IMG/VR virus record: IMGVR_UViG_3300036760_000522 | Span: 124,001 to 188,000 of that record | Reading direction: 5' to 3' (one strand) | DNA: 64,000 nucleotides | In this document: one piece after another, positions 1-33,654 of the stretch | Position numbering within the stretch: position 1 is the stretch's first letter | Layout of the letters: each line of letters starts with the position of its first letter | Notes under the pieces: model-generated | Told to the model about the DNA's origin: nothing | Database searches by the model: none | The model's input: only the letters and a program-made list of their open reading frames with translations | Translations under genes and position numbers: made by a program

Positions 1-651
1 GTTGGGTGCCGAGAACGCCTGCTGTGTTGCGTCGGCGACCATCGAACCCTCCCAAAGGAACAAGCCCGCATAGTGGTCAGGGAACGCGTTGACGGTCGCT
101 TGTGCGAACATGGCGCCACCGACGTAGCCTCCAATCACGACCTTCTGGCTGGGGTTGTAGGCGGCAAGGACAAGGCCCCTCACGAACTCAGCGTCGTCGA
201 TCCTGGTCTGAACGGTCCAACTGCCCATCGCGAGACATCCGGTTGACTCACACGTCCCTGGGGCTTGCTTCGACAGCCTGTCGTCGATCACCCAGACATC
301 GAACCCTAGCGTTGCGAGGGAGCCCAGAAAGGACTTCCGGTAGTTGGTCGTCTCTGTGAGCTCGTACCATCGGACGTCGTATCCAAATGGTCCGTGAAGA
401 ATGACCGGCTTGTGTGAGTACGAAGACTTGACGCGAGTCACCCCAAACACGTTCAGAGGATCTGTCCCCTGCTGGACGGTGTGCTTGGTTCGTGTGAGAC
501 CCGTCGCAGGGTTGTCGATCACCGTGGCAGTGACAGAGTAGTCGCTGAGTGCTTGTGTGACCACCTCGACATCTTGTGAGGCTTGTTGATCAGGTGCGCC
601 TGAGCACGCAAAAAGTAGGGCAACGGCGAGTGTGATTTGGATGGTTTTCAT
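1..651 (-). CDS. Alpha/beta-hydrolase-fold lipoprotein (partial, runs off left edge); nucleophile position is Val
   Basis: Manual translation from ATG at 651, open to position 1 and absent from the ORF track. MKTIQITLAVALLFAC lipobox, VILHGPFG, LATLGFDVWVIDDR, KVVIGGYVGGAMFAQ, PDHYAGLFLWEG. Confidence 0.75.
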   Translation of the reverse strand, partial: MKTIQITLAVALLFACSGAPDQQASQDVEVVTQALSDYSVTATVIDNPATGLTRTKHTVQQGTDPLNVFGVTRVKSSYSHKPVILHGPFGYDVRWYELTETTNYRKSFLGSLATLGFDVWVIDDRLSKQAPGTCESTGCLAMGSWTVQTRIDDAEFVRGLVLAAYNPSQKVVIGGYVGGAMFAQATVNAFPDHYAGLFLWEGSMVADATQQAFSAPN

Positions 652-661
652 GATGTGGGGA

Positions 662-691
662 AACCTACGATCCAAAATACGATCAAGTCAA
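662..691 (-). promoter_or_regulatory. Sigma70-like promoter for the hydrolase-like gene
   Basis: TTGACT-N18-TAGGTT ending 10 nt upstream of the ATG, with a GATCGTA direct repeat inside. Confidence 0.4.
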
Positions 692-697
692 TATTTA

Positions 698-773
698 TGG
701 AGCGGGTGACCGGAATCGAACCGGCCGACATTTGCTTGGAAGGCAACGACCTCGCCATTGAGGTGACACCCGC
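698..773 (-). tRNA. tRNA-Gly(TCC), CCA encoded
   Basis: GCGGGTG/CACCCGC acceptor stem, CTTCCAA anticodon loop, GGTTCGATTCC T-arm, U73-CCA. Confidence 0.93.
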
Positions 774-781
774 GAGAATAG

Positions 782-853
782 CTGTAGGGGAGGGATTCGA
801 ACCCCCGATCTGTCGGTTAACAGCCGACCGCTTTACCGCTTAGCCACCCTACA
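782..853 (-). tRNA. tRNA-Asn(GTT)
   Basis: TGTAGGG/CCCTACA acceptor stem, GTCGG-CTGTTAA-CCGAC anticodon arm, GGTTCGAATCC T-arm. Confidence 0.93.
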
Positions 854-854
854 A

Positions 855-921
855 TGGCGTCCCATGACGGATTCGAACCGTCGCTACCTGCGTGAGAAGC
901 AAACGTCCTGAGCCACTAGAC
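855..921 (-). pseudogene. tRNA-Glu(CTC) lacking the 5' acceptor strand
   Basis: D arm GTCT..GGAC, TTCTCAC loop, T-arm and ATGGGAC-G-CCA are present. The upstream AATTGAAGG cannot pair with ATGGGAC. Confidence 0.75.
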
Positions 922-1093
922 CCTTCAATTCCCAATCGATCTGATCCCTACTTACGCGGATCACAAAACAAAGAAACAAGTTTGTGGGCAGATCGGTACC
1001 TTGGTGGGCACCGATCTGCCACACGAGTGAAAAACACGAATTGTCAAAAAGCAAGGTCCTCGAAAGGACTTTTGAAGAGACCTGAAGTCTCAG

Positions 1094-1165
1094 TTCCAGG
1101 AGCTGGAATCGAACCAGCGTTCCGTCGTTCAGAGCGACGTGGCCTACCAATTAGCCGATCCTGGA
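1094..1165 (-). tRNA. tRNA-Gln(CTG)
   Basis: TCCAGGA/TCCTGGA acceptor stem, CGTCG-CTCTGAA-CGACG anticodon arm, GGTTCGATTCC T-arm. Confidence 0.92.
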
Positions 1166-1181
1166 ATACGAACTTCTTCTG

Positions 1182-1254
1182 TGGGCTGCCCGAGAATCGA
1201 ACTCGGAACTTTCAGGTTAAGAACCTGCTACTCTACCTGTTGAGTTAGCAACCC
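1182..1254 (-). tRNA. tRNA-Lys(CTT)
   Basis: GGGTTGC/GCAGCCC acceptor stem, CAGG-TTCTTAA-CCTG anticodon arm, AGTTCGATTCT T-arm. Confidence 0.9.
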
Positions 1255-1260
1255 ATCAAG

Positions 1261-1333
1261 TGGAGGTGACAGGGATCGAACCTGCAATCTACGTGTTAAA
1301 AGCACGTTGCATTACCAATTTAGCTACACCTCC
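1261..1333 (-). tRNA. tRNA-Lys(TTT)
   Basis: GGAGGTG/CACCTCC acceptor stem, ACGTG-CTTTTAA-CACGT anticodon arm, GGTTCGATCCC T-arm. Confidence 0.92.
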
Positions 1334-1398: not shown

Positions 1399-1481
1399 TG
1401 GGTCCGTGAAGAGTTGAACTTCTTAGCCAATGGCCCCACGTTTACAGCGTGAGTCGCGTTCCGACGACGAACCCCGGACCC
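1399..1481 (-). tRNA. Atypical tRNA-Tyr(GTA) with long variable arm and non-canonical D arm
   Basis: GGGTCCG/CGGACCC acceptor stem, CACG-CTGTAAA-CGTG anticodon arm, GGCC-ATT-GGCT variable arm, GTTCAACT T-loop. U8 is absent. Confidence 0.75.
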
Positions 1482-1490
1482 AGAAATGTC

Positions 1491-1520
1491 AAAAGCCGCC
1501 TCGGATTTCCCGGGCGGCTT
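1491..1520 (-). terminator. Intrinsic terminator (attenuator) immediately upstream of the tRNA array
   Basis: RNA AAGCCGCC-CGG-GAAAU-CCGA-GGCGGCUU-UU. Confidence 0.8.
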
Positions 1521-1560
1521 CAAAGAACAAAGTTTGGTGAGTTCTTTCTCAGCCGCCTCG
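1491..1560 (-). promoter_or_regulatory. Terminator/antiterminator switch overlapping the leader ORF stop codon
   Basis: AGCCGCCTCG occurs at both 1494-1503 and 1551-1560. AAAGAAC (1522-1528) and GTTCTTT (1541-1547) form an inner stem. The two hairpins are mutually exclusive. Confidence 0.7.
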
Positions 1561-1791
1561 ACAATACGTCTCCGAATTCATATACCGCTTCGCTGCTTCT
1601 CGTAGGCGTTGACTTGGCTGCGGGGGATTTTCGATGAGTCCCATTACTGTCGTAAACGCCTCAGCAGACAACGTGATGACAGTGTCGCTATCCAAACCAC
1701 GCGGGACATCTGACGCTCGGAGATCCGTGAGCGGTTTCCTGGGACCGTCAAGGTAGGTCACCGCTGGTGTGGGCCACAATTCACGAGGCAT
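1549..1791 (-). CDS. DUF1778/TacA C-terminal-like small protein; attenuator leader ORF
   Basis: ITLSAEAFTTVMGLIENPPQPSQRLREAAKRY resembles the C-terminal half of DUF1778. No RHH N-terminus is evident. Confidence 0.65.
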   Translation of the reverse strand: MPRELWPTPAVTYLDGPRKPLTDLRASDVPRGLDSDTVITLSAEAFTTVMGLIENPPQPSQRLREAAKRYMNSETYCRGG

Positions 1792-1800
1792 GACGGATCG

Positions 1801-1829
1801 AACCTGACAGGAACTAACTAGCCCGTCAA
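1801..1829 (-). promoter_or_regulatory. Sigma70-like promoter of the leader/tRNA operon
   Basis: TTGACG-N17-CAGGTT ending 9 nt upstream of ATG 1791. Confidence 0.45.
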
Positions 1830-2154: not shown

Positions 2155-2250
2155 ACGGGCACTGGATGCGATCGCGAATTGAGCCGAACGGGTTGAAGGC
2201 TACGTAACTAGTGAAAGCTCTTGTGGCCTCGCCCCTGTCAGGTGAAGCCC

Positions 2251-2733
2251 ATGATGAAAAATCTAATCGCTCTTTGTGTCGTATCCACTCTCGTCTTCGG
2301 TTGCGAACGCACTCCGACGCCAGAAGACCTCAATAACCTTCGGGACACGGTGACCAAAGGTGTCGCCACCACGACGGCCTTGGTTGAATCCGCCAAGACG
2401 ACCTTCCAGGAGGCCGCAGAAGCCCTGAAACAGCCCGGCGGCTGTGCCAAGGTCCAAGGAATGGTCAAGACCATCACCCGGTCCGGTGAGGCGGCCATCG
2501 CCGCTGGTGCCCTCGTGCAGACAGCTTGCGCCATCCTCCCGCTGTTCAAACAAGACGACAAGACGATCCGAACGCTCACGGACGAAGTCTGTCCAACCGT
2601 CACCAAAATCACCGATGCCGTGCCTGCCATCCGAGAACAGGCTCTCGCGCTTGGTGCTCAAGCCGACAAACTTTGCTCGATGCTGAAGGTGGCGGAACCT
2701 TGTCCGGAACCTGCGCTTAACCTGAAGAAGTAA
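2251..2733 (+). CDS. Helical lipoprotein
   Basis: MKNLIALCVVSTLVFGC lipobox followed by amphipathic helices with Cys pairs. Confidence 0.75.
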   Translation: MMKNLIALCVVSTLVFGCERTPTPEDLNNLRDTVTKGVATTTALVESAKTTFQEAAEALKQPGGCAKVQGMVKTITRSGEAAIAAGALVQTACAILPLFKQDDKTIRTLTDEVCPTVTKITDAVPAIREQALALGAQADKLCSMLKVAEPCPEPALNLKK

Positions 2734-2739
2734 GCACCA

Positions 2740-3954
2740 GTGAAAACCAAAAACCTCATCTCAGATGGCGTCGTCGCTAGTGCAATGGCGCACTGGCGAT
2801 TCAACACTTTCGGCGCCCAGTCATTTCCGGTCGAAACCATATCCCCGTACGTCGTCAACATTGCCGACAATTCCTTCGTCTATCCTGCACACGAAATCTT
2901 GTTGGCTGGACGATACAACAGCTCATTTGAAGCTGAAATAATCATTGGTGGAGATGGCAGCGGAGCAGGTGTTGGGTCTAGCGCTGCTAGTGGCTGGCAC
3001 ATTTTGCCTGGGATTGCAGGCTTCGTAGCAGGCGGTACCAATACGCTAACAGTGCTGGGGGAGTACCAAGGGGTCTCGATTGCTGTAGAGCACGGCAGTC
3101 AGGACGTTTACCGCACCAGCAACTCTACTACGTTTTCAGTGGTCTCAACCGTCGCCCCAACGTCACACGGTCTTTCAGCCCTAGCCTTATCCCGCTCCAC
3201 TTTTCCCGGGCGTATCATAGTGGGCGTGTACGGCGCAGGCACCACACAAAACCGCATCTCTACAAGTGACAATGGCGGTGCATCTTGGACGATTCGCGCC
3301 GTCCCTACTTCGTGGAACGTGAGCCACATCTTCCACATCATACCCAGCCACACGTCGGATCTGATAGTGCTCGCCACGGGCAGCCTGTTGGGGTCCATTC
3401 TGCGTTCGACAGACAACGGAATCACTTGGTCTTCCATCACGCTGCCTTCTGAGTTCTCGAGCAGCTTCTTCGGCTGGGACACCTACCAAGTCGCGTGGAG
3501 TCCCGTCTGGCGGCAGTACCTGCTCTTGGACGGGTCTTTGCAGATGGCAGTTTCACCCGACGGCCTAAGCTGGACTGTCATACCTGGGTCTTCGGCTTCT
3601 GCTTACGCCAATATCATCGAGCCGTCAGGTACTGATCGCGGAAGACTTCTGGCTGCAAACGGTTCCGTGTTTTGCCTAGCTGCAAACACAAAGGGGCTTT
3701 CCAATGACTTGTACGTTCGCGGGGGTCTTTGGACAGCAAACGCCGGCAGAACCTGGAATTTCTCTGCGTTCGGAAATGCCAACAACAGCACGTCTTACCA
3801 TCTTCGTGGGATCAAGCCCTGGAGAAACGGATTTGCTGCGTTCAGTCAGTACGGAGTCTACTTGTCCGGATCCTTGAAATTCGAACATCCGACGTATGAC
3901 TTCGGCAGCTTACAAGCTGGTTTGCCCCACAACGACTTGGGTTACAACTTCTAA
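2740..3954 (+). CDS. Asp-box/BNR beta-propeller protein (putative virion or receptor-binding)
   Basis: SDNGGASW, STDNGITW, SPDGLSW, TANAGRTW repeats. Confidence 0.75.
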   Translation: MKTKNLISDGVVASAMAHWRFNTFGAQSFPVETISPYVVNIADNSFVYPAHEILLAGRYNSSFEAEIIIGGDGSGAGVGSSAASGWHILPGIAGFVAGGTNTLTVLGEYQGVSIAVEHGSQDVYRTSNSTTFSVVSTVAPTSHGLSALALSRSTFPGRIIVGVYGAGTTQNRISTSDNGGASWTIRAVPTSWNVSHIFHIIPSHTSDLIVLATGSLLGSILRSTDNGITWSSITLPSEFSSSFFGWDTYQVAWSPVWRQYLLLDGSLQMAVSPDGLSWTVIPGSSASAYANIIEPSGTDRGRLLAANGSVFCLAANTKGLSNDLYVRGGLWTANAGRTWNFSAFGNANNSTSYHLRGIKPWRNGFAAFSQYGVYLSGSLKFEHPTYDFGSLQAGLPHNDLGYNF

Positions 3955-5210
3955 GGCAACCACATACGAGGGTCGACAGGGTTTGTGGCCCCGTACGCAG
4001 GTATGGCGTAGGCGTCACTTGCGAATACAGCTGGATCGTTCACGCCTGGGTAGTAAACGTGAATTCGAGATCCGTCATTCAACAATGAGACAGGATTCGG
4101 GTTCGAGTCGTTGTCCGTGAACGGATAGTCTGATTGATCGAAAAATGGTGCAGTCAAGGAAGTTAGGAACTGCCAGAGGCGTCCCCCGTTGCGGCTGATG
4201 AAAACCTGTGGCGGTGTACCGTACATGCCCAGCATGATTTGCCCTTCCGGATCAACCTTCTCAATGACGTTGAAGCTCAACCCAACAGCAGTGGTTGCCG
4301 ATGTTGGAAGGTTGGCATCCAGAACTCGACACGTAGTCCACGTAGCTCCGCTATCGTCGGAGTAGTACTGCTCCTCGCCGTCAGCGTCGGACCCCATGAT
4401 CCATCGGTTAAACATCGACGAGTACTGGATCTCCACATACGGAGAAGGAGTCAACGAAAGTGCCATGACAGCCCAAGTGACACCACCGTCCAACGAGCGA
4501 TACGTTGCACCAAATGACGTTCCAACCATCTGAACCGTACCTGTGTCGTCAATTTCGTAGTTGACGACTTCAAAACTTGGAATGGGTGTTGTGGTGATAG
4601 CAGTAAAGCCAGTTGAAGTGGCAGTCGCACCTGAAGCGCGGCAAATACTAGCGGTTCCACCAGTATTGTTGTTCACCAAATAATAGTAGAAGTTGCCGGC
4701 CCGACGCAAGGCAAGGGCTTCACCAACTGTGACTGAATGACCGGGGGGCGGAGCAAGCCAGTTATCCGAACTAGCCGTCGGAATAGCAGCCCCGTAAGGC
4801 AAAGCCATGATGCGAGGAATCGACACCGAGCTTTTTCCGAGCACCCACAAAAAGCTGGTGTAGTAATGTGCCGAAGATACGTGTGTGTACGTGATGGTAC
4901 CTGTTGTCTTGGTAGGAAAAATCGTCGTTTCGTTGAAGCGACACAGTGTGTTGAGGTAGCTCGTAGCGTCTACAAAGGTGTTTCCACTGACAGCCAGTCC
5001 GCTGTTGTACGGACTGGTAATCGAACCGCCGCGAAACATGACGCGCACGAGTCGCCGCCCTGCGCCCACAAAGACGGTTCCCCGCCTAAGTAACGAACCG
5101 TGGATCCCAGTAGTTTCCGCGCCAAAATCCAAATGGCCGGCGAACCGCCAATTGAGCGCGGCCTGAAGGTAACTGGGGTTCCGCAGATTGATCTGGTGTA
5201 GTTCCGGCAT
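3951..5210 (-). CDS. Asp-box/BNR beta-propeller protein
   Basis: SLDGGVTW, SDDSGATW, SRNGGRLW repeats. Confidence 0.75.
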   Translation of the reverse strand: MPELHQINLRNPSYLQAALNWRFAGHLDFGAETTGIHGSLLRRGTVFVGAGRRLVRVMFRGGSITSPYNSGLAVSGNTFVDATSYLNTLCRFNETTIFPTKTTGTITYTHVSSAHYYTSFLWVLGKSSVSIPRIMALPYGAAIPTASSDNWLAPPPGHSVTVGEALALRRAGNFYYYLVNNNTGGTASICRASGATATSTGFTAITTTPIPSFEVVNYEIDDTGTVQMVGTSFGATYRSLDGGVTWAVMALSLTPSPYVEIQYSSMFNRWIMGSDADGEEQYYSDDSGATWTTCRVLDANLPTSATTAVGLSFNVIEKVDPEGQIMLGMYGTPPQVFISRNGGRLWQFLTSLTAPFFDQSDYPFTDNDSNPNPVSLLNDGSRIHVYYPGVNDPAVFASDAYAIPAYGATNPVDPRMWLP

Positions 5211-7855: not shown

Positions 7856-8260
7856 ATGAACACTTCACGCTTTCCGAACTTCCGGGAGTTCATGCTCCTC
7901 GCTAGCGAAATCGACATCAGCCGGCCTCCAGGGTTCTTGTCACAAACCTACTCTGCACGCCGATACGTCGAGTTGTATGACCTCGCCGAACGGGCTTGGA
8001 ACAGTTGCGGCGACCAAGGACCGAGGATTGATTCCATGGTCGTTGCCGTGACCAACGAGTTCATTTTCAACGAAGAAGCGGGCAAGCTCGTCGCCATGAC
8101 AGACACCCGCTTTACCTGTGGTGCACTGCTGCGCTTCAAAGGACCTGTGATAGGCTTTCCCCTCTTTGCGGTCCACCTCACAGGTACGGGCATGGACGCC
8201 TACGTCGAGTCAAAATATTGGTGGACCTACGTCCTACCACTTCAACCCAAATACCTCTGA
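7856..8260 (+). CDS. Hypothetical protein
   Basis: ORF with tight operon spacing. Confidence 0.55.
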   Translation: MNTSRFPNFREFMLLASEIDISRPPGFLSQTYSARRYVELYDLAERAWNSCGDQGPRIDSMVVAVTNEFIFNEEAGKLVAMTDTRFTCGALLRFKGPVIGFPLFAVHLTGTGMDAYVESKYWWTYVLPLQPKYL

Positions 8261-8286
8261 AAATCTCAAACACGAAAGAACCCACC

Positions 8287-9174
8287 ATGCGCGCCTTTGC
8301 CTCATCGTCGATCACATTCGGTCTCGTTTCGATCCCCGTCAAACTTTACGTCTCGGCCTCGGACGATCGCCCACACCTCAACATGCTCACCAAAGACGGG
8401 CACCGCGTCAAACAACAGATGCTCGATGCGGAAACCAGCCTACCTGTCGAACACAGTGAGTTGGATCGCGGCTACGAAGTCAGCAAGGGACAGTTCGTCC
8501 GAATCACCAAAGAGGAGCTTGCGTCGCTCGAGACCAAGGCCAACCAGGTTGTCGAGATCTTGGAATTCGTACCCATCGGCCATGTGGACTTCGTACAGTC
8601 TGAGAAGACCTACTACCTCAGTCCTGACAAGGGGGGAGACAAGGGCTACACGTTGCTCGCGGAAACCTTGGCCGTACAACAGGTGCAAGCAATCGCCAGA
8701 TGGACCAACCGCGGCAAGCAACACCTGGTCACCGTCCGAACCTACCGTGGAGGACTCGCACTCCAGGTGCTCTTCTACTCAAGTGAGGTACGCGACTTCG
8801 AGGAGGTTAAGGCCGCCAAAGTCGAAATCTCACAAGCTGAACGTGACTTGGCCAACCAACTCGTAGCGCACCTAACAAAGCCATCCTCTGACATCAGCCA
8901 GTACACAGATGAGTGCACGGCAACGCTGATGCGACTTGTCGACGCCAAAGTCGCCGGTCGTGAGATCGAAATCCCCCAAGCCTCCGGACAACCCGCCGTA
9001 CTCGACCTTTTTGATGCTCTCAAACGCAGCCTCGAAATCTCGGCGCAAAATACACCGAAACTCGCAAACGGGACACCGTCTGAAAAAATCAACGGCTCCT
9101 CACCGTCTCATGACAAGAACACCAACAAACCTAAATCAACCAAAAAATCAAAATCACACGCGCGTACGACTTGA
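8287..9174 (+). CDS. ku: Ku DNA end-binding protein
   Basis: ITFGLVSIPVKLY, RGYEVSKGQFV, EKTYYLSPDKGGDKGYTLL, DLFDALKRSL, basic tail. Confidence 0.95.
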   Translation: MRAFASSSITFGLVSIPVKLYVSASDDRPHLNMLTKDGHRVKQQMLDAETSLPVEHSELDRGYEVSKGQFVRITKEELASLETKANQVVEILEFVPIGHVDFVQSEKTYYLSPDKGGDKGYTLLAETLAVQQVQAIARWTNRGKQHLVTVRTYRGGLALQVLFYSSEVRDFEEVKAAKVEISQAERDLANQLVAHLTKPSSDISQYTDECTATLMRLVDAKVAGREIEIPQASGQPAVLDLFDALKRSLEISAQNTPKLANGTPSEKINGSSPSHDKNTNKPKSTKKSKSHARTT

Positions 9175-20317: not shown

Positions 20318-20906
20318 GGCGAACTCTCTCACCGATCTTGTGCAGCAAAGCGTTGAGAGATTTTTTGGCTTCCTCGTAGCTCAAAGTCCCGTGTCGAACA
20401 GCGTAATCGATGCGATCCAATACGATGCCAGCAGCTGCGTAGCTCTTGAAGTTGTCGGTCCGAAGAAAATCGTCTCGCGTGCTACACAACCTAGTCTCTA
20501 CTTGCATCTGAAACTCTGACCACGACTCGTGTCGGCGATCAGAGACCTCTTTTACGGCATCGACACCTTCAGGAACTGGAGGTGTCGGGATCTGGTAGGC
20601 ACGCTCAATTTCCGAAAGGGTTTTCCCAAATGGCTGCTCTGAATCGTTGAACTTTCTCCAAAGAGCAATGACGTCCCAACGCTCTCGACAGACGAAACAC
20701 CAGGCTCCGCTGGGCCCCCCTGAAGACGTAAGATAGACTCGGGCACTCGGCTTCTCGTCCTTACCGTGAAAGGGACAAGAGATCTGCTCTTCCTTGTCGT
20801 GGCTTGAAAGCTTGATGCCGTGTTGGCGCAGAACGCTGTGCACAGACACTTGGTCATGAATTTTCGCAACCCGTTGTTTGTACCAAGCACGAAGTTCGTC
20901 ACTCAC
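20286..20906 (-). CDS. CHC2 zinc-finger protein (primase Zn-binding domain, no TOPRIM)
   Basis: CPFH.KDEKPSA...WCFVC...WDVI. Confidence 0.85.
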   Translation of the reverse strand: MSDELRAWYKQRVAKIHDQVSVHSVLRQHGIKLSSHDKEEQISCPFHGKDEKPSARVYLTSSGGPSGAWCFVCRERWDVIALWRKFNDSEQPFGKTLSEIERAYQIPTPPVPEGVDAVKEVSDRRHESWSEFQMQVETRLCSTRDDFLRTDNFKSYAAAGIVLDRIDYAVRHGTLSYEEAKKSLNALLHKIGERVRHGPASQNPDT

Positions 20907-23662
20907 AGTCCAGCCTCATTCAACAGTCGCAAATCCTCTTTGGTCAGCTCCTTGTTGTTGAAGGATTCCTGTCCTTCCAGGTTGCGCAACCTTCGAGCGT
21001 TCGCGAAGTCGACCTTCACCTTAATCTTGCTGAACAAGTCGTTGTCGCGGTTCTTAAGATTGCAAAAAATAGTCTCTCCTGCTGCCCGTAAGGAGTCGCA
21101 CAAATACGTCGTCGTCACGTAATCCGCGGAGCGTTCTGCCTCATTGGCATAAGACAAATTGCTGAACCGATACACACCCTCCTTCTCGGTCCCTTCCTGC
21201 TTGTCCGCTGCGTCTTTGCCCTGACGGTTGATCTGGTGCAACAACAAAACCGGTAAGCCAGTCCCCCCATTGAAATGTAGGGCAAGGAGCTTAGCGTCAA
21301 CAATTACTGTGTTGTGCTCAACAGTGTAGTCCTTGTGTGCCCGAGCAGCTTTGACAAGACCACTATGATCGACGACCAGTAGCCCAACATCCATCGATCG
21401 ATGAACGGACTCCGCATACACACGAATGTCATCGACACCGACTTTGCGATCAGGTGAATAGACCCGAATCTTGTGGTATTCAGGATTGTTCTCGAGATCG
21501 TGTAGGGCTTCTTTGTAGAAGGCTTCTTCCTCCCTAGTCAAGTCTCCGTCACGTACCTTGCGATAGTCCAAGGGTTGTCGACCCTGAGCTGTGAACTTCC
21601 CGTTGGATGTGTGCATCACAGCCAGTAGACGTCGCAAATGCTCGTACCGCATTTCGAGGCTGACGTACAGGCTGTGTGTGCGATAGCGTGTCGCCAGGTT
21701 GTAACACCAATTGATCGCAAAACTCGAATTGTGAGTGATAATGTCATTCGCTACGAAAGTGCGGTGCACAGGCACTGATAGGTCATAGGTCATTTCAACG
21801 CCCATTGAATTAACACTCTTGACACAATCCCAGTAAATATCGCCTGTGCTCACGCCAAATTTTTCAGCGACATCCGAGGTAACCGTGGGATTGTTTCTCG
21901 AGGCTGTACGAGCATACCTCCAATGTCCATTGATCTTAATGCGACGTCCATCTGGCAATAGACTAGAAGGCACAGGAGTCGAGTCTATTTTAGGTAGACG
22001 CGAAAGGAGTCGAGAAAATTTAGCCTCTTTGCCTACAATCCGAACTTTTTCACAGAACAACCGTTTGCTTGGATTGGTGACTATTCGGACAGTCCAGAAA
22101 CGATATGGGCGGTCCTCTACCTTTGTATTAACGAAAGTAACCGTTGATTTTATACCTAGACGTAGCAGCAGAGACTGTATGTCCTCACAAAGCTCTCTAC
22201 ACACGGACGAATAGGTGATGATGTGACTGGACTGCTTAGCACCTGTTCCGTCTTTGTTGATTCGATCCTTTCGAACGTAGTCGTCGGTGCAACAGGATCC
22301 GTTTGTTGACCACAAGGCTCCCAACAGAGCCGCGACAAGATCCTCGCTCATTCCAAAAAACTCACTTGGAATCCGCTTGTTGTAAGAGTCCGTCCCGTAA
22401 AGACCGAGCTGCTCTAAAAGAAGCCGAAGTGGAGAAACCGTACGATGCCACCGATCACCTAAACCGTGAGCAACTCGAACATACGGAACACGTTGGCCGC
22501 CCTGAGGAACATTTAGAGAAAACCAAGGATTTTCATAGTCGGGCTCTCCTTCTATGTAACCAAGGTCTCTCAAACAAGTAACGAAATCACACAAAATGGG
22601 CCCGTCTTGTTGTGTGAAGTTGATGCATTGTCCGATCGCACCGTCCCCGATGAGATAGCCAACCAATTTGACCTCTGAGAGCGAGTACGGTCGTGCCCCC
22701 ACAGCCCTCATGACTTTGGGGGTCGCTACAAAGTCCCCTTCCTTCAATGACGACAACGACTCCCATCCGAAAGGAGTGAGAAATTTGTGATTGGAGGTGG
22801 CACCTATACGCCGGCCTGACACAAGTAACAGTTCAAATATTTCACGTCTTCCGTTCTGAACTAGATGTGAAGCCGGAGTTTGTACAAGTACTGGGCTTGC
22901 CCCTTCATTTTGGATCGCTGACACTACCGGCAAGTCGCCGCAGGCGTACAGCTCTGACAGGCGCCGACGTCGTTGGGTGCGGTGGTCAAATACTGTAGTG
23001 TCTCCTGCTAGGCATTTCAACTCTCCTGTCGCGGCAGCGTGAACCCACAGTTCTCCTTTCTTGATGCCATGGCACGTTTTGTCAATATGATCAATGCCTG
23101 TGAACTTCCCATAAGCCTTGTCTTTCTGTGACTTGGCATCTTGGTACTCTGTCCACACACGTTCCGTATCGTGTACGATGTCCCCTTCAATTTGAATGTT
23201 GTGGTCTCGAGGAACCTCCTCGTAGACGTGTTGGTTGAAGTACTGTAGCGCGTGTGTGACGCCTTTCAGCTGTGTCTTGCCTTCGACACGTCCCCTCGTG
23301 ATGATCTCTTCGACGTCACGTAGCAGTTTTCGAACCTTGTTCTGGGCCTGTTCCTCACGTAGCGTTCTGAGTAGCGTGCCGTAGTTACTACGAGTGTAGG
23401 CTTCGACTGTTTTGATGTCGGCAAGTTTTTCGACAACCGTTATTTCGTTATTTCGTTCGAAGTAATCTCGAATCGACGCCCAGTCCGGAGGTTCCAGATT
23501 CTGTTGAACGTACTCCTGTACGTAGGTCCAGATCTTGGTTTCATCAGGGTTGTGCCACTCAAACCCTGATCTCAATAGACGACGATAGTTGCCGTCTATT
23601 TGCTCAATCGTGAGCTTAGCATCCCCAAAATCGATGATGCCCCGTAAAAGCCGTTTGGACAT
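20903..23662 (-). CDS. dnaB: DnaB-like replicative helicase with intein
   Basis: Walker A AAATGELK|SS split by the intein; SLEM, VVDH, HQINR, AERSAD, LKNR. Confidence 0.92.
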   Translation of the reverse strand: MSKRLLRGIIDFGDAKLTIEQIDGNYRRLLRSGFEWHNPDETKIWTYVQEYVQQNLEPPDWASIRDYFERNNEITVVEKLADIKTVEAYTRSNYGTLLRTLREEQAQNKVRKLLRDVEEIITRGRVEGKTQLKGVTHALQYFNQHVYEEVPRDHNIQIEGDIVHDTERVWTEYQDAKSQKDKAYGKFTGIDHIDKTCHGIKKGELWVHAAATGELKCLAGDTTVFDHRTQRRRRLSELYACGDLPVVSAIQNEGASPVLVQTPASHLVQNGRREIFELLLVSGRRIGATSNHKFLTPFGWESLSSLKEGDFVATPKVMRAVGARPYSLSEVKLVGYLIGDGAIGQCINFTQQDGPILCDFVTCLRDLGYIEGEPDYENPWFSLNVPQGGQRVPYVRVAHGLGDRWHRTVSPLRLLLEQLGLYGTDSYNKRIPSEFFGMSEDLVAALLGALWSTNGSCCTDDYVRKDRINKDGTGAKQSSHIITYSSVCRELCEDIQSLLLRLGIKSTVTFVNTKVEDRPYRFWTVRIVTNPSKRLFCEKVRIVGKEAKFSRLLSRLPKIDSTPVPSSLLPDGRRIKINGHWRYARTASRNNPTVTSDVAEKFGVSTGDIYWDCVKSVNSMGVEMTYDLSVPVHRTFVANDIITHNSSFAINWCYNLATRYRTHSLYVSLEMRYEHLRRLLAVMHTSNGKFTAQGRQPLDYRKVRDGDLTREEEAFYKEALHDLENNPEYHKIRVYSPDRKVGVDDIRVYAESVHRSMDVGLLVVDHSGLVKAARAHKDYTVEHNTVIVDAKLLALHFNGGTGLPVLLLHQINRQGKDAADKQEGTEKEGVYRFSNLSYANEAERSADYVTTTYLCDSLRAAGETIFCNLKNRDNDLFSKIKVKVDFANARRLRNLEGQESFNNKELTKEDLRLLNEAGL
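21728..23014 (-). mobile_element. Intein (429 aa) with LAGLIDADG homing endonuclease, inserted in the DnaB P-loop
   Basis: K|CLAGDT start and TYDLSVPVHRTFVANDIITHN|S end; endonuclease motifs LVGYLIGDG and LLGALWSTNG. Confidence 0.93.
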
Positions 23663-30135: not shown

Positions 30136-33100
30136 TTACGCAGTCTCGCGACGGGGCGGAGGCCGCGTGGAGACTTTGACGATGTTGGGGCCGATGCTCC
30201 TCTCGCCTGTGGTTCGCGCAACGGCCTTCCACTGTCGATGCTTGCCGTTGAAGCTCACCGCCATGCCCAATGCCTCCAGTGTTTCCAATGCAGGGACAAC
30301 TGCGTCCGCCGAAGCGCCAATGTACAACGCAGCGACATCATTGGCTGTTAGGGCCTCGCTGCTAGCTACGATGAAATCTCGAATCGCCGCGACCTGCTGC
30401 GGCAACTCCATTGGCCACGGCAACTGAAGCTGGTGTTCTGGCGCCTCTGGCACACGCACAGCCCGAGGAACGGCCCCCTTTGCTTCTTGGAAAGCAGGTC
30501 GCAGCCAACGAACCGTTCCGGACGACTCCTCGGCGGTGCGCACTTGATTCAGAGTGAGTAGTTTCTCCAGAACGATGTCGTCAGAGAGCCCTCCTGACCA
30601 ACCATAGGCACTACATACGGCCTCATCGAGGTCTGAATGAAGCCTCTGTAGGCCCGAGACCAAGCCCTGGTCGTAGCTCAGTCTCTCTTTGTCCGTCAGC
30701 GGTTCACCAGACCGGAGCTTCTCGAGCACATTGTACATTGCAGTGATCGTTAGCTGCGGGTGTGCGGCCTGCTGGCGCCTGCGATGGCCATCAAGTTGTT
30801 CACCCAGATCGCGAATGCACTGTCGCTGTGTCTCCGTGGCGGACGGGAAAGGAAAAGTCTCAAAGCAGCGCGTCTTATTGTAGCGAGGCCGATCCTCGAG
30901 GGTTCCACCAGCGGCTAACGCCCACGCAACATGTATCCGACTGGATAGAACACCGAGTACATATGCGTCGTCGGCTGCTATGTTCACGAGCATGTTATCC
31001 GGAAGCACGGCTTCGTCGAGGAAAACGAACACTCGGTGCTTGGCTGTTTCGACCGTCGCAATGAAACGTGAGAGCCCAACAAGTGCGGGGCGAAAGGCAC
31101 TCCGAGGCTCGCCGTGTATCCACCAGTTGTCGCGGTAGACTGCTCGTCTATTTTGGTCTCTCTCCGGTTTGACCGTGTCGTGGATGTGTTGAAACACTTC
31201 CGGGAAGCGTTTTTGGACTTGCCCGAGGGTTAGGCCAAACAAGTCGATGACCCAGACTCCTCGAGGAGTCTGGGTCACGTCACGCCCATTTCGGTACTCG
31301 CGAATGTGCCGTTCGAGTCCTTCTTTTCGACCCAACCCGAGCTGTTCTGCTTTGTCCGGCCTGACGACAAATCCCGAGCCGTGGAGCTTAACACCAGGGC
31401 AGCTCAAGGCTTCATTGGAGCGAAGCGGAGCCGCACTCGAAACGTCTGCTCCGACTGAGAGATCGGCAGAGATAGTGCCGATGCGTGTGGCGAGTTCAAT
31501 AGTGGCACCGAGGCTCCCCTGGTTAGACTCGCATTGGACCGACAGCAGTCGACCAGCATGAATTCCGGCTTGGCCAACCGTCATGGAGATTCGTACCGCG
31601 GCACCATCCGCAGAGTCGACCCAAGGATGGTCTGGGATGGCGAAGACCAATGATAGTGGCTCCTTGTCGCTCAGGTGGGTTCTGACAACTCTGCGGTTGA
31701 AGGTCTGCCGCAGGCTGTTGGTAGCAATGAATCCGAATCGCCTTGCACGCCCTGCACGAACGAGTTCTGCGGCCTTGTGCCACCAGTACATCACGTAGTC
31801 ACACGACTCGGGAAGCTCCGGGTAAGCGTCGCGGATGGTTTCAGCATAGCCCTCCCCAAGTGTCCCGCGCATTCGTCCATTGCCCACGAATGGGGGGTTC
31901 CCTACGATGAAATCCGCGGCTGGCCAGTCAGCCCTCCTTGGGTTGATATACCGAACAACAGGCACCTGCGCCGTTTCATCTGGGACCTCGTCGCCGGTCA
32001 CATGGCTCTTCTTCATCGTCTCGCCGTCCCAAAAGGTCAGCAATGCGCCTGTGTGCTCATTGCGAGCTTCTTCTTCATGATCGTAAGCGAGCACCGCATC
32101 TCTGCATTCGATATTCTTGTCGTCCCTCAGGATTGGTTCTGGAGGTGTTTTTGACTGCCCGTACATCTTGTGATGCCATTGCAGGTAGCCGATCCACAGA
32201 ACCAGCTCGGCGATCTCCTTCGACCCACGACGGGCCTCGATACCTTTGAACTGTCGAGGCGTCACCATCATGTTTTCGCCCAGTTCCTGTTGCTTCATAC
32301 CCAGGTCGAAAAGCGTCGCCAGGACCTCGCTTTCCAAACGCTTGAAAAGGTTGAGCGCAACATAGAGAAAATTTGCAGATCCACAGGCCGGGTCGAGCAC
32401 GGTCGTGTTGCAGAGCTTCTCCAAAAATTCTCGAACAACGGACTGAGCTTCGTTTACTCTCTTTGGCGGCGAGAACTCGCCCGGTGGCACTAGCTGTCGA
32501 ACCCTGACTCGTACGATGTCCCATTCGGCGCGCAGTGGTTCCTCGATGGTCGGAACAAGCAAACGCTCTACGTACGAAGTCGGAGTAAAATGCGCGCCCA
32601 ACTTGTGACGCTCCTTCGGATCCAGGGCTCGCTCAATAAGCGTGCCAAAAATCGCTGGCTGCACGTCACACCACTCGCGCTTGGCTGCTTTGAGCAATAT
32701 TCTCAATTGCGTTGCCTCAAGGGGTAACGCCTCCGGATCCGCGAAAAGTCCACCATTGAACTGCAAGAGCTTTCCGAGAATGAAGAAGCTTTTCCCAGAA
32801 TTCATCGCGTCCCAAAGTGCCTCGACACCAGTCTTGAACGATGACGGATCCGGAATCCATGTTTTCTCCAAAGCGGTGGTGAACACCTTTTCTCGCAAAA
32901 GACCGATATCTTCGGCAAACATTGTGAAGACGCACCGCATCAGAAACCTCGCCACGACCTCGGACGAGTAACTGGTTTTTTCGAGTTCGCCAGCGAGGAC
33001 GGCAAGGTCGGTTGCAATTTCGCGAGTCACCTCCTCAGACTTGCGTGCCGGGTCGAGACTGCGAGGGTCAAGCCAGATCGCCCGCAAACAGTCAGAATGG

Positions 33101-33654
33101 TTTGCCAGGTCACTCAGGAAGATGCGGTTCTTCTGGTTATTCGGATAGGCGTGGTAGGCCCCACTGCCGTCAAAGCACGCGAACAGATCGAAACAGTACC
33201 CGATGTCGGTGACGATCACGAATGGGGGTGGCTGCGCCACGCCTTTCGTGTAGCGAAGAGCCTGACCTTGGGCAGCGTTCATTGCCGAACTCCAGCCTGG
33301 AGTTCCTCGTACTGCGGTTCCCTTCTTTTTACTGCCCTTGTTGGACCCCTGCTTGGCCTCCAACACGAAGCACCCCTGTTTGTACAGATCCATCAAGCCA
33401 GATTTTTGACCGTCGTGTTCGTGAATGACAGCGTCGGCTTCGAAGACGTAGACGTCCTGTTCTGGATCGCCCGTCTTTGCGTTGGGCTCCGGAACGCCGA
33501 GGGCTCTGCACAAATCTTTGCAGAAGCTATCCTTGTTTGCGCGTTCACTGCCCTCGCTGTGTTGCCAGCGGGCTATGAAGTCGTCGATTGGCACTAGTGT
33601 ATCGCTTTCGGCGATTGGTGGCCCACGCAGACGAACCAGTCCGTCAGACTGCAT
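30136..33654 (-). CDS. MmeI-like type IIL restriction-modification enzyme (endonuclease, m6A MTase and TRD)
   Basis: DLYKQGCFVLEAK, GAHFTP, LDPACGSANF, GNPPF, TAKHRVF, RPRYNKTRCFETFPFP. Confidence 0.92.
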   Translation of the reverse strand: MQSDGLVRLRGPPIAESDTLVPIDDFIARWQHSEGSERANKDSFCKDLCRALGVPEPNAKTGDPEQDVYVFEADAVIHEHDGQKSGLMDLYKQGCFVLEAKQGSNKGSKKKGTAVRGTPGWSSAMNAAQGQALRYTKGVAQPPPFVIVTDIGYCFDLFACFDGSGAYHAYPNNQKNRIFLSDLANHSDCLRAIWLDPRSLDPARKSEEVTREIATDLAVLAGELEKTSYSSEVVARFLMRCVFTMFAEDIGLLREKVFTTALEKTWIPDPSSFKTGVEALWDAMNSGKSFFILGKLLQFNGGLFADPEALPLEATQLRILLKAAKREWCDVQPAIFGTLIERALDPKERHKLGAHFTPTSYVERLLVPTIEEPLRAEWDIVRVRVRQLVPPGEFSPPKRVNEAQSVVREFLEKLCNTTVLDPACGSANFLYVALNLFKRLESEVLATLFDLGMKQQELGENMMVTPRQFKGIEARRGSKEIAELVLWIGYLQWHHKMYGQSKTPPEPILRDDKNIECRDAVLAYDHEEEARNEHTGALLTFWDGETMKKSHVTGDEVPDETAQVPVVRYINPRRADWPAADFIVGNPPFVGNGRMRGTLGEGYAETIRDAYPELPESCDYVMYWWHKAAELVRAGRARRFGFIATNSLRQTFNRRVVRTHLSDKEPLSLVFAIPDHPWVDSADGAAVRISMTVGQAGIHAGRLLSVQCESNQGSLGATIELATRIGTISADLSVGADVSSAAPLRSNEALSCPGVKLHGSGFVVRPDKAEQLGLGRKEGLERHIREYRNGRDVTQTPRGVWVIDLFGLTLGQVQKRFPEVFQHIHDTVKPERDQNRRAVYRDNWWIHGEPRSAFRPALVGLSRFIATVETAKHRVFVFLDEAVLPDNMLVNIAADDAYVLGVLSSRIHVAWALAAGGTLEDRPRYNKTRCFETFPFPSATETQRQCIRDLGEQLDGHRRRQQAAHPQLTITAMYNVLEKLRSGEPLTDKERLSYDQGLVSGLQRLHSDLDEAVCSAYGWSGGLSDDIVLEKLLTLNQVRTAEESSGTVRWLRPAFQEAKGAVPRAVRVPEAPEHQLQLPWPMELPQQVAAIRDFIVASSEALTANDVAALYIGASADAVVPALETLEALGMAVSFNGKHRQWKAVARTTGERSIGPNIVKVSTRPPPRRETA

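Follow-up and report, generated by a model that had tools for sequence, protein, structure and literature searches.

The stretch analysed here, referred to as the window, comprises 64,000 nucleotides and corresponds to bases 124,001-188,000 of the IMG/VR record IMGVR_UViG_3300036760_000522 (301,550 bp). The record carries direct terminal repeats, has a CheckV completeness of 62% and a GC content of about 54%; its length together with the repeats indicates a jumbo phage. DNA sequencing runs containing the region came from sediment and freshwater, and a blastn search against GenBank phages matched only tRNA genes. The window encodes a replication module with PolA, an intein-containing DnaB helicase, an SNF2 helicase, an MmeI-like enzyme and Ku. 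The DnaB-like helicase gene (20903-23662, minus strand) is split by an intein with a LAGLIDADG domain; the MmeI-like enzyme (1172 aa; 30136-33654, minus strand) has N-terminal, helicase-spacer, methyltransferase and TRD domains; and the phage-encoded Ku homologue lies at 8218-9174 on the plus strand. The features of the window that concern this study are as follows.

1549..1791, minus strand: mini-antitoxin ORF, 80 aa from the first ATG, with a TGA stop codon at 1551-1549
1582..1695, minus strand: conserved core, residues 33-70, assigned to toxin binding from Pfam, the AtaR/KacA alignments, pLDDT >90 and the predicted interface
1484..1520, minus strand: terminator-like hairpin between the ORF (stop codon 28 nt upstream) and the first tRNA-like gene
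1400..1481, minus strand: non-canonical cloverleaf resembling tRNA-Tyr(GUA), at the head of the array (MFE fold)
1260..1333, minus strand: tRNA-Lys(UUU) (ARAGORN, Rfam)
1181..1254, minus strand: tRNA-Lys(CUU) (ARAGORN, Rfam)
1093..1165, minus strand: tRNA-Gln(CUG) (ARAGORN, Rfam)
855..921, minus strand: tRNA-Glu(CUC), 67 nt, matched by Rfam only in part (model positions 9-63)
781..853, minus strand: tRNA-Asn(GUU) (ARAGORN, Rfam)
701..773, minus strand: tRNA-Gly(UCC), found by Rfam only (40 bits); cloverleaf with anticodon loop CUUCCAA
6010..7464, minus strand: Topo IB-GNAT fusion (PF01028, E 8e-25; PF00583, 21.9 bits)

The tRNA region lies between two ORFs with lipoprotein-type signal peptides (1-675, minus strand; 2221-2733, plus strand). 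Beyond the latter, two convergent genes (2740-3954, plus strand; 3951-5210, minus strand) encode 400-aa proteins with BNR/Asp-box-like SxDxGxTW repeats.

The mini-antitoxin ORF matched the Pfam family PF08681 (TacA1/DUF1778) with 26.3 bits (E 7.1e-6), above the gathering score of 21 bits, and a genome-wide Pfam scan gave the same result. The match joins residues 33-70 of the ORF to positions 41-78 of the 80-position profile, that is, to its C-terminal half only. A phmmer search of PDB chains found AtaR of E. coli (6gtq_C and 6ajm_C, E 2e-4) and KacA of K. pneumoniae (5zgn_A, E 0.02) in ungapped alignments that span ORF residues 36-71 and cover only the C-terminal 35 residues of the antitoxins (AtaR 51-85, KacA 52-85). 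The core consists of the strand VITLS, the helix AEAFTTVMGLIE, the linker NPPQPS and the helix QRLREAAKRY, and by alignment it is equivalent to the βB-αC-PPAP-αD segment of KacA (52-85). The peptide quoted in the preliminary description of this DNA corresponds to residues 39-67. The true start is uncertain, since translation could also begin in frame at codon 11 (GTG) or codon 33 (TTG), and the ribosome-binding site of the ORF is weak in the window.

Residues 1-32 had no Pfam or PDB match. In an AlphaFold2 model built on a 24-row alignment, pLDDT was 45-66 over residues 1-40 and exceeded 90 across residues 41-70, with helices at 43-54 and 61-78; the β-α-α unit of a ribbon-helix-helix (RHH) domain, which we sought in this model, was absent. 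The HMM search and the model thus bear out two statements of the preliminary description, namely that the ORF resembles the C-terminal half of DUF1778 and that it has no RHH N-terminus. PADLOC gave no match, and NCBIfam no meaningful match, for the mini-ORF or for the full-length antitoxin and toxin described below.

The ORF belongs to a family of nine distinct sequences of 50-80 aa, found on phage-like contigs: the 80-aa protein of the window, the 98%-identical P0001, P0002, P0007-P0011, and a 59-aa variant in L084, the one further variant that a metagenome scan yielded. Single-sequence searches reached few of them. A word-indexed search returned only two proteins and exhaustive phmmer five, three of which were long multi-stretch proteins judged to be spurious; a profile of three sequences, the ORF and its first two matches, was needed to reach the 50-61-aa proteins P0002 and P0007-P0011. 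Scans of IMG/VR found nothing beyond the 98%-identical relative. All nine variants have the motif (I/L)xLSxEAxxxxxxxxxNPPQPSxRLRxAA(K/R)R in common and are truncated at an identical boundary. Their N-termini are short and variable, with 13-25 residues before the core in the other variants; the window's copy is the most diverged, lacking a conserved W and carrying a lineage-specific, proline-rich N-terminus of 35 aa.

After the mini-ORFs themselves, the closest relatives in the profile search were full-length proteins of a 114-aa family (E 1e-6 to 1e-4), and canonical PF08681 proteins ranked lower (E from about 1e-4 to 1). The 114-aa antitoxins consist of a CopG-like RHH start (MRLEATVPD...), a long linker and a tail, ...L(E)W....LELPxEALxKMxxLxxxPPxPSxRLRAAAKRH, to which the mini proteins align over their full length, the conserved W included. 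The tail common to both groups reads L(E/A)W...LELS..AL.KM....NPPQPSERLRAAAKR, and by local alignment score the window's core is nearest to P0012 of the 114-aa family. Pfam TacA1 does not recognise this family, and its profile reached AtaR and CopG in the PDB only at E 0.4-0.7; these weak matches are consistent with an RHH domain followed by a DUF1778-like tail.

A scan of species-representative genomes for the 114-aa family gave 61 loci, labelled as Myxococcota lineages (44), "Deltaproteobacteria" (12) or other or vague taxa (five). At 52 of 64 loci a GNAT gene encoding a homologue of a 179-aa protein lies directly downstream of the antitoxin gene, and in L015, L017 and L079 the two genes overlap by 4 nt. 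The 179-aa GNAT protein matched TacT (6g96, 5fvj, 7ak7-9), KacT (5zgn) and AtaT (6ajm, 6gtq) in the PDB with E 4e-15 to 1e-6. From the homology of the tail and the pairing of the 114-aa antitoxin genes with a GNAT gene, the phage peptide is the counterpart of the toxin-neutralising tail in a genuine RHH-GNAT module. Genes for HicB, AbiEi_1 and DUF433 adjoin the Myxococcota modules (L015 1321-1854, L017 4884-5669, L079 5123-5356), and these neighbours of toxin-antitoxin (TA) or abortive-infection type suggest that the modules lie in TA or defence islands. Judged only from the taxonomy of the antitoxin's relatives, the host phylum of the phage is most likely Myxococcota; genomes of this phylum are typically much GC-richer than that of the phage.

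The residues on which neutralisation depends in KacA are largely conserved in the phage ORF. The C-terminal βB-αC-PPAP-αD segment of KacA wraps KacT, and neutralisation of KacT is lost in the R77A mutant and in the M65A/I68A/Q70A mutant (PMC6698736). R77 corresponds to R62 of the phage protein, M65 to M50, I68 to I53 and Q70 to N55, and PPAP corresponds to PPQP at 56-59. In PDB 6gtq/6gtr, a 46-aa AtaR chain lacking the RHH domain stands alongside the AtaT chain; the RHH domain is therefore dispensable for complex formation in AtaRT.

Three runs of a co-fold that paired ORF residues 30-80 with the toxin encoded next to P0012 (L079 4342-4884, a metagenomic contig) returned ipSAE values of 0.81, 0.81 and 0.82, whereas the highest value among three controls was 0.01. 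The interface on the peptide comprises residues 36-74, that is, the conserved core. Of 80 solved complexes, 58 attained the mark used, as did 2 of 110 mismatched pairs; these counts hold only roughly because our own alignments were supplied. The model supports binding of the phage peptide to a TacT-family GNAT toxin, in line with the partner class named in the preliminary description; since solved AtaRT, KacAT and TacAT look-alikes exist, the pass may reflect likeness to remembered structures and not binding. Full neutralisation by KacA takes two antitoxin chains per toxin, both held by the RHH dimer, and a monomeric fragment may therefore neutralise less well.

The explanation we favor, and consider the probable one, is that the mini-antitoxin is an RHH-less orphan antitoxin that acts in counter-defence by keeping a host TacT-type toxin inactive during infection. 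A jumbo phage would have captured the toxin-wrapping C-terminal module of a DUF1778/TacA antitoxin (strand, helix, PPxP linker and helix), leaving out the RHH domain for DNA binding and dimerisation. The peptide would be made early, with or just before the phage tRNA cluster, and would bind a TacT/KacT/AtaT-like GNAT toxin of the host in the manner of the cognate antitoxin, covering the acetyl-CoA groove and the dimer surface. As the labile host antitoxin decays during infection, the peptide-bound toxin would then be unable to acetylate aminoacyl-tRNAs. In this scheme we infer the binding, the neutralisation, the timing, the identity of the host and the role of the host TA module in anti-phage defence. 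Our literature search found no paper in which GNAT/RHH modules defend against phage, and no phage orphan antitoxin or mimic of the DUF1778 type. GNAT/RHH modules are also missing from the defence models of PADLOC.

The setting of the ORF is a tRNA array. ARAGORN identified 14 tRNA genes in the genome, all on the minus strand at genome positions 119,145-125,333, and the mini-antitoxin ORF lies at the 5′ end of this region on the same strand. On the minus strand of the window, the order is ORF, hairpin, Tyr(GUA)-like element, Lys(UUU), Lys(CUU), Gln(CUG), Glu(CUC), Asn(GUU) and Gly(UCC). The tRNA-Glu(CUC) gene is 67 nt long here and 76 nt in the close relative L002, and the window's copy may be damaged. 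The Tyr-like element was not called by ARAGORN and had no Rfam match at E<=1. Its MFE cloverleaf has a long variable arm, an anticodon loop CUGUAAA and an aberrant D region, with a 1-nt 8/9 connector and a 5-nt D loop; an alternative acceptor pairing gives a 6-nt connector. The same odd element occurs 3′ of the ORF in L004 (6197-6285) and L008 (about 3285-3370). In L009-L011, L080 and L081, the array starts with a canonical tRNA-Tyr, whose anticodon lies at position 38 in L080. The aberrant Tyr-like tRNA could be a nuclease-evading tRNA or a decoy.

Every variant of the mini-ORF lies inside or heads the same array (Tyr, Lys, Lys, Gln, Gln, Asn). In the head type, represented by L004 and L008, the ORF is followed by the Tyr-like element and then by Lys, Lys, Gln, Gln and Asn; the protein of these two loci is about 40% identical to the window's overall and 59% over the core. 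In the interior type (L009-L014, L080, L081, L082 and L084), the ORF is placed between tRNA-Gln(CUG) and tRNA-Gln(UUG). In five contexts of this type, 17-18 nt separate tRNA-Gln(CUG) from the ORF and 9-12 nt separate the ORF from tRNA-Gln(UUG); the first of these spacers contains AAGGAAAG-like purine runs that provide a ribosome-binding site. The related phages have only a few scattered genes in common with the window's genome, at 38-62% amino acid identity, and the linkage of ORF and array has therefore persisted through considerable divergence and one or more rearrangements. The ATG of the ORF is directly preceded (window 1792-1812, minus strand) by a motif resembling a T-loop, GGTTCGATCC, together with a TGACGG/CCGTCA inverted repeat. 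No tRNA could be resolved from this motif; it may be a leftover tRNA 3′ end, as expected had the ORF once lain inside the array.

The preliminary description had presented the ORF as the first gene of a tRNA operon. Its position and strand agree with this statement; the hairpin at 1484-1520, however, separates the ORF from the tRNAs in the window. This GC-rich hairpin, read from the sequence, has an eight-pair stem (AAGCCGCC/GGCGGCUU) present in both the MFE and the centroid folds, a 12-nt loop and a following UUGACAUUU U tract. A consensus terminator scan missed it because the loop exceeds 8 nt, and a weak Rfam match to RcsR1 at 1493-1520 (E 0.55) was set aside as the terminator-like hairpin itself. 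The hairpin could act as a terminator or attenuator of transcription, or else shield the mRNA at its 3′ end. A scan of positions 600-2400 for sigma-70 promoters found none. The strongest support for co-transcription comes from the relatives with the ORF between two tRNA-Gln genes: the gaps leave no room for a promoter or terminator of its own, so the ORF would there be part of the tRNA precursor. A further suggestion of the preliminary description, that the same ORF serves as a sensor, found no support.

This linkage raises the possibility, which we rate as appreciable but well short of even, that ORF and array form a coordinated island for the protection of translation, close to the two-layer counter-defence proposed in the preliminary description. 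The tRNAs would replace cleaved host species while the peptide blocks acetylation, and the placing of the ORF within the tRNA precursor would ensure that both are made together. The persistence of the linkage in all contexts, across such distantly related phages, and the confined interior copies argue for such an island. Phage tRNAs are, moreover, documented counter-defences against anticodon nucleases and against retron and Septu effectors (PMC10264068, PMC11555353, PMC13096335), and for each of Lys, Gln and Glu the genome carries both isoacceptors, a redundancy not accounted for by codon compensation alone. On the other hand, most characterised GNAT toxins target Gly-tRNA (PMC9177977), whereas the conserved neighbours of the ORF are Tyr, Lys, Gln and Asn, and an extra tRNA would also be acetylated once charged. 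The position of the ORF varies between lineages (head or interior), and the terminator-like hairpin intervenes in the window. The arrays also hold GIY-YIG and HNH homing endonucleases and may merely tolerate small inserts; they may thus be simply permissive sites or general anti-defence islands. Homing-endonuclease-like genes of the HNH and GIY-YIG types lie in or beside the related arrays (L009 3857-4315, L010 4512-5099, L004 4050-4466), a setting that recalls the amplification of anti-defence loci driven by SegB in T-even phages (PMC13096335).

A bolder proposal, which we offer as speculation and think rather improbable, is that GNAT/RHH modules constitute an unrecognised anti-phage defence of Myxococcota. 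A clade of large phages would answer it with a bare peptide whose mRNA is cut from the tRNA precursor by tRNA processing, and peptide and unusual tRNAs, such as the aberrant tRNA-Tyr, would form one island that keeps the aminoacyl-tRNA pool usable.

Returning to the orphan antitoxin, the preferred reading, the phage itself appears to lack a toxin. Directly downstream of the ORF are tRNA genes and no bicistronic GNAT toxin gene, the other ORFs within 5 kb had no toxin-like family match, and no TacT-like toxin was found in the 301-kb record; this absence is strong, not absolute, because CheckV completeness is 62%. Across the 301,550 bp of the record, Pfam GNAT models matched at a single place, the C-terminal domain of the Topo IB fusion, whose gene shares the strand of the mini-antitoxin and lies 4.2 kb from it. 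This domain had no TacT/AtaT-like match in a PDB search, and hhalign gave it a probability of 0.2% against the TacT-like toxin profile, indicating that the two are unrelated; the fusion was accordingly rejected as the cognate toxin. The preliminary description is right that no toxin lies adjacent to the ORF. Its account of an orphan, RHH-less fragment of DUF1778 type also stands; the neutralising region and the KacA neutralisation residues are kept, the gene is phage-encoded, and it lies at a tRNA array in all relatives found.

The nearby GNAT domain gives rise to a further alternative, that the peptide acts on a non-toxin or phage-encoded partner, for example by regulating the Topo IB-GNAT fusion or another acetyltransferase. 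The shared strand and short distance speak for it, as does the presence of a Topo IB gene near the ORF in the close relative L002, but the dissimilarity of this GNAT domain to TacT-like toxins and the lack of such a neighbour at the more distant mini-ORF loci make it very unlikely.

Substitution patterns bear on whether the ORF encodes a functional product. Between lineages, the 31-codon core has pS of 0.63-0.75, which is saturated, and pN of 0.25-0.35; between the window and L002, the full ORF differs by six synonymous and three non-synonymous changes. Saturated synonymous sites in a conserved core indicate purifying selection on the translated product, not a decaying fragment, and by these sequence comparisons the mini-antitoxin ORF is a real gene and no relic. 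The alternative that the ORF arose by chance, or is a functionless remnant of a TA module that was phage-borne or had been captured, would fit a domain fragment with no partner gene, a weak ribosome-binding site in the window and a lineage-specific proline-rich N-terminus, but is scarcely credible given this selection, the single truncation boundary in nine variants, the Pfam score above the cut-off, the retained KacA functional residues and the conserved position at the array.

Relative to known systems, the phage ORF is homologous to the C-terminal strand-helix-PPxP-helix region of TacA, AtaR and KacA, the DUF1778 antitoxins of GNAT-RHH type II TA systems, and keeps their neutralisation residues. 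Unlike them, it has no RHH domain and hence neither autoregulation nor an antitoxin dimer, it has no adjacent GNAT toxin gene, and it is phage-encoded within a tRNA array. With the Myxococcota modules of 114-aa and 179-aa proteins, the latter TacT/KacT/AtaT-like, it has in common the antitoxin tail from L(E/A)W to RLRAAAKR(H/Y); in contrast to the mini-ORFs, the 114-aa antitoxins have a CopG-like RHH domain, a long linker and a 4-nt overlap with the toxin gene. The phage copies start at about the point where the linker of the 114-aa antitoxins ends.

Orphan antitoxins and antitoxin mimics are a recognised form of phage counter-defence, examples being T4 Dmd, AdfN against DarTG1 (PMC11825919) and the DarTG antitoxin mimic encoded by phage ICP1 (PMC11481870). 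Like these, the mini-antitoxin is phage-encoded, has no cognate toxin partner and mimics or stands in for a host antitoxin, with neutralisation predicted in the present case. In contrast to them, it belongs to the GNAT/DUF1778 family, is a bare binding peptide and not an enzyme, and is known here from sequence and a model. Its surroundings resemble anti-defence phage tRNA arrays, with tRNAs for the common nuclease targets Lys, Tyr, Gln, Asn and Glu and with homing endonucleases in the relatives; the difference is a candidate anti-toxin protein gene embedded between tRNA genes.

The biological role of GNAT tRNA-acetylating modules is still debated. Should it neutralise host GNAT toxins, the peptide would be the first reported phage counter-measure to the large DUF1778/GNAT family and, by implication, the first indication that tRNA-acetylating GNAT modules act in phage defence. 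It would also represent a natural antitoxin cut to its neutralising module and would help to define a minimal TacT-type inhibitor. The protein genes wedged between tRNAs with spacers of 9-18 nt would allow the idea of tRNA-punctuated mRNA release to be tested in a phage, and the mini-antitoxin makes the role of GNAT TA modules in phage defence directly testable.
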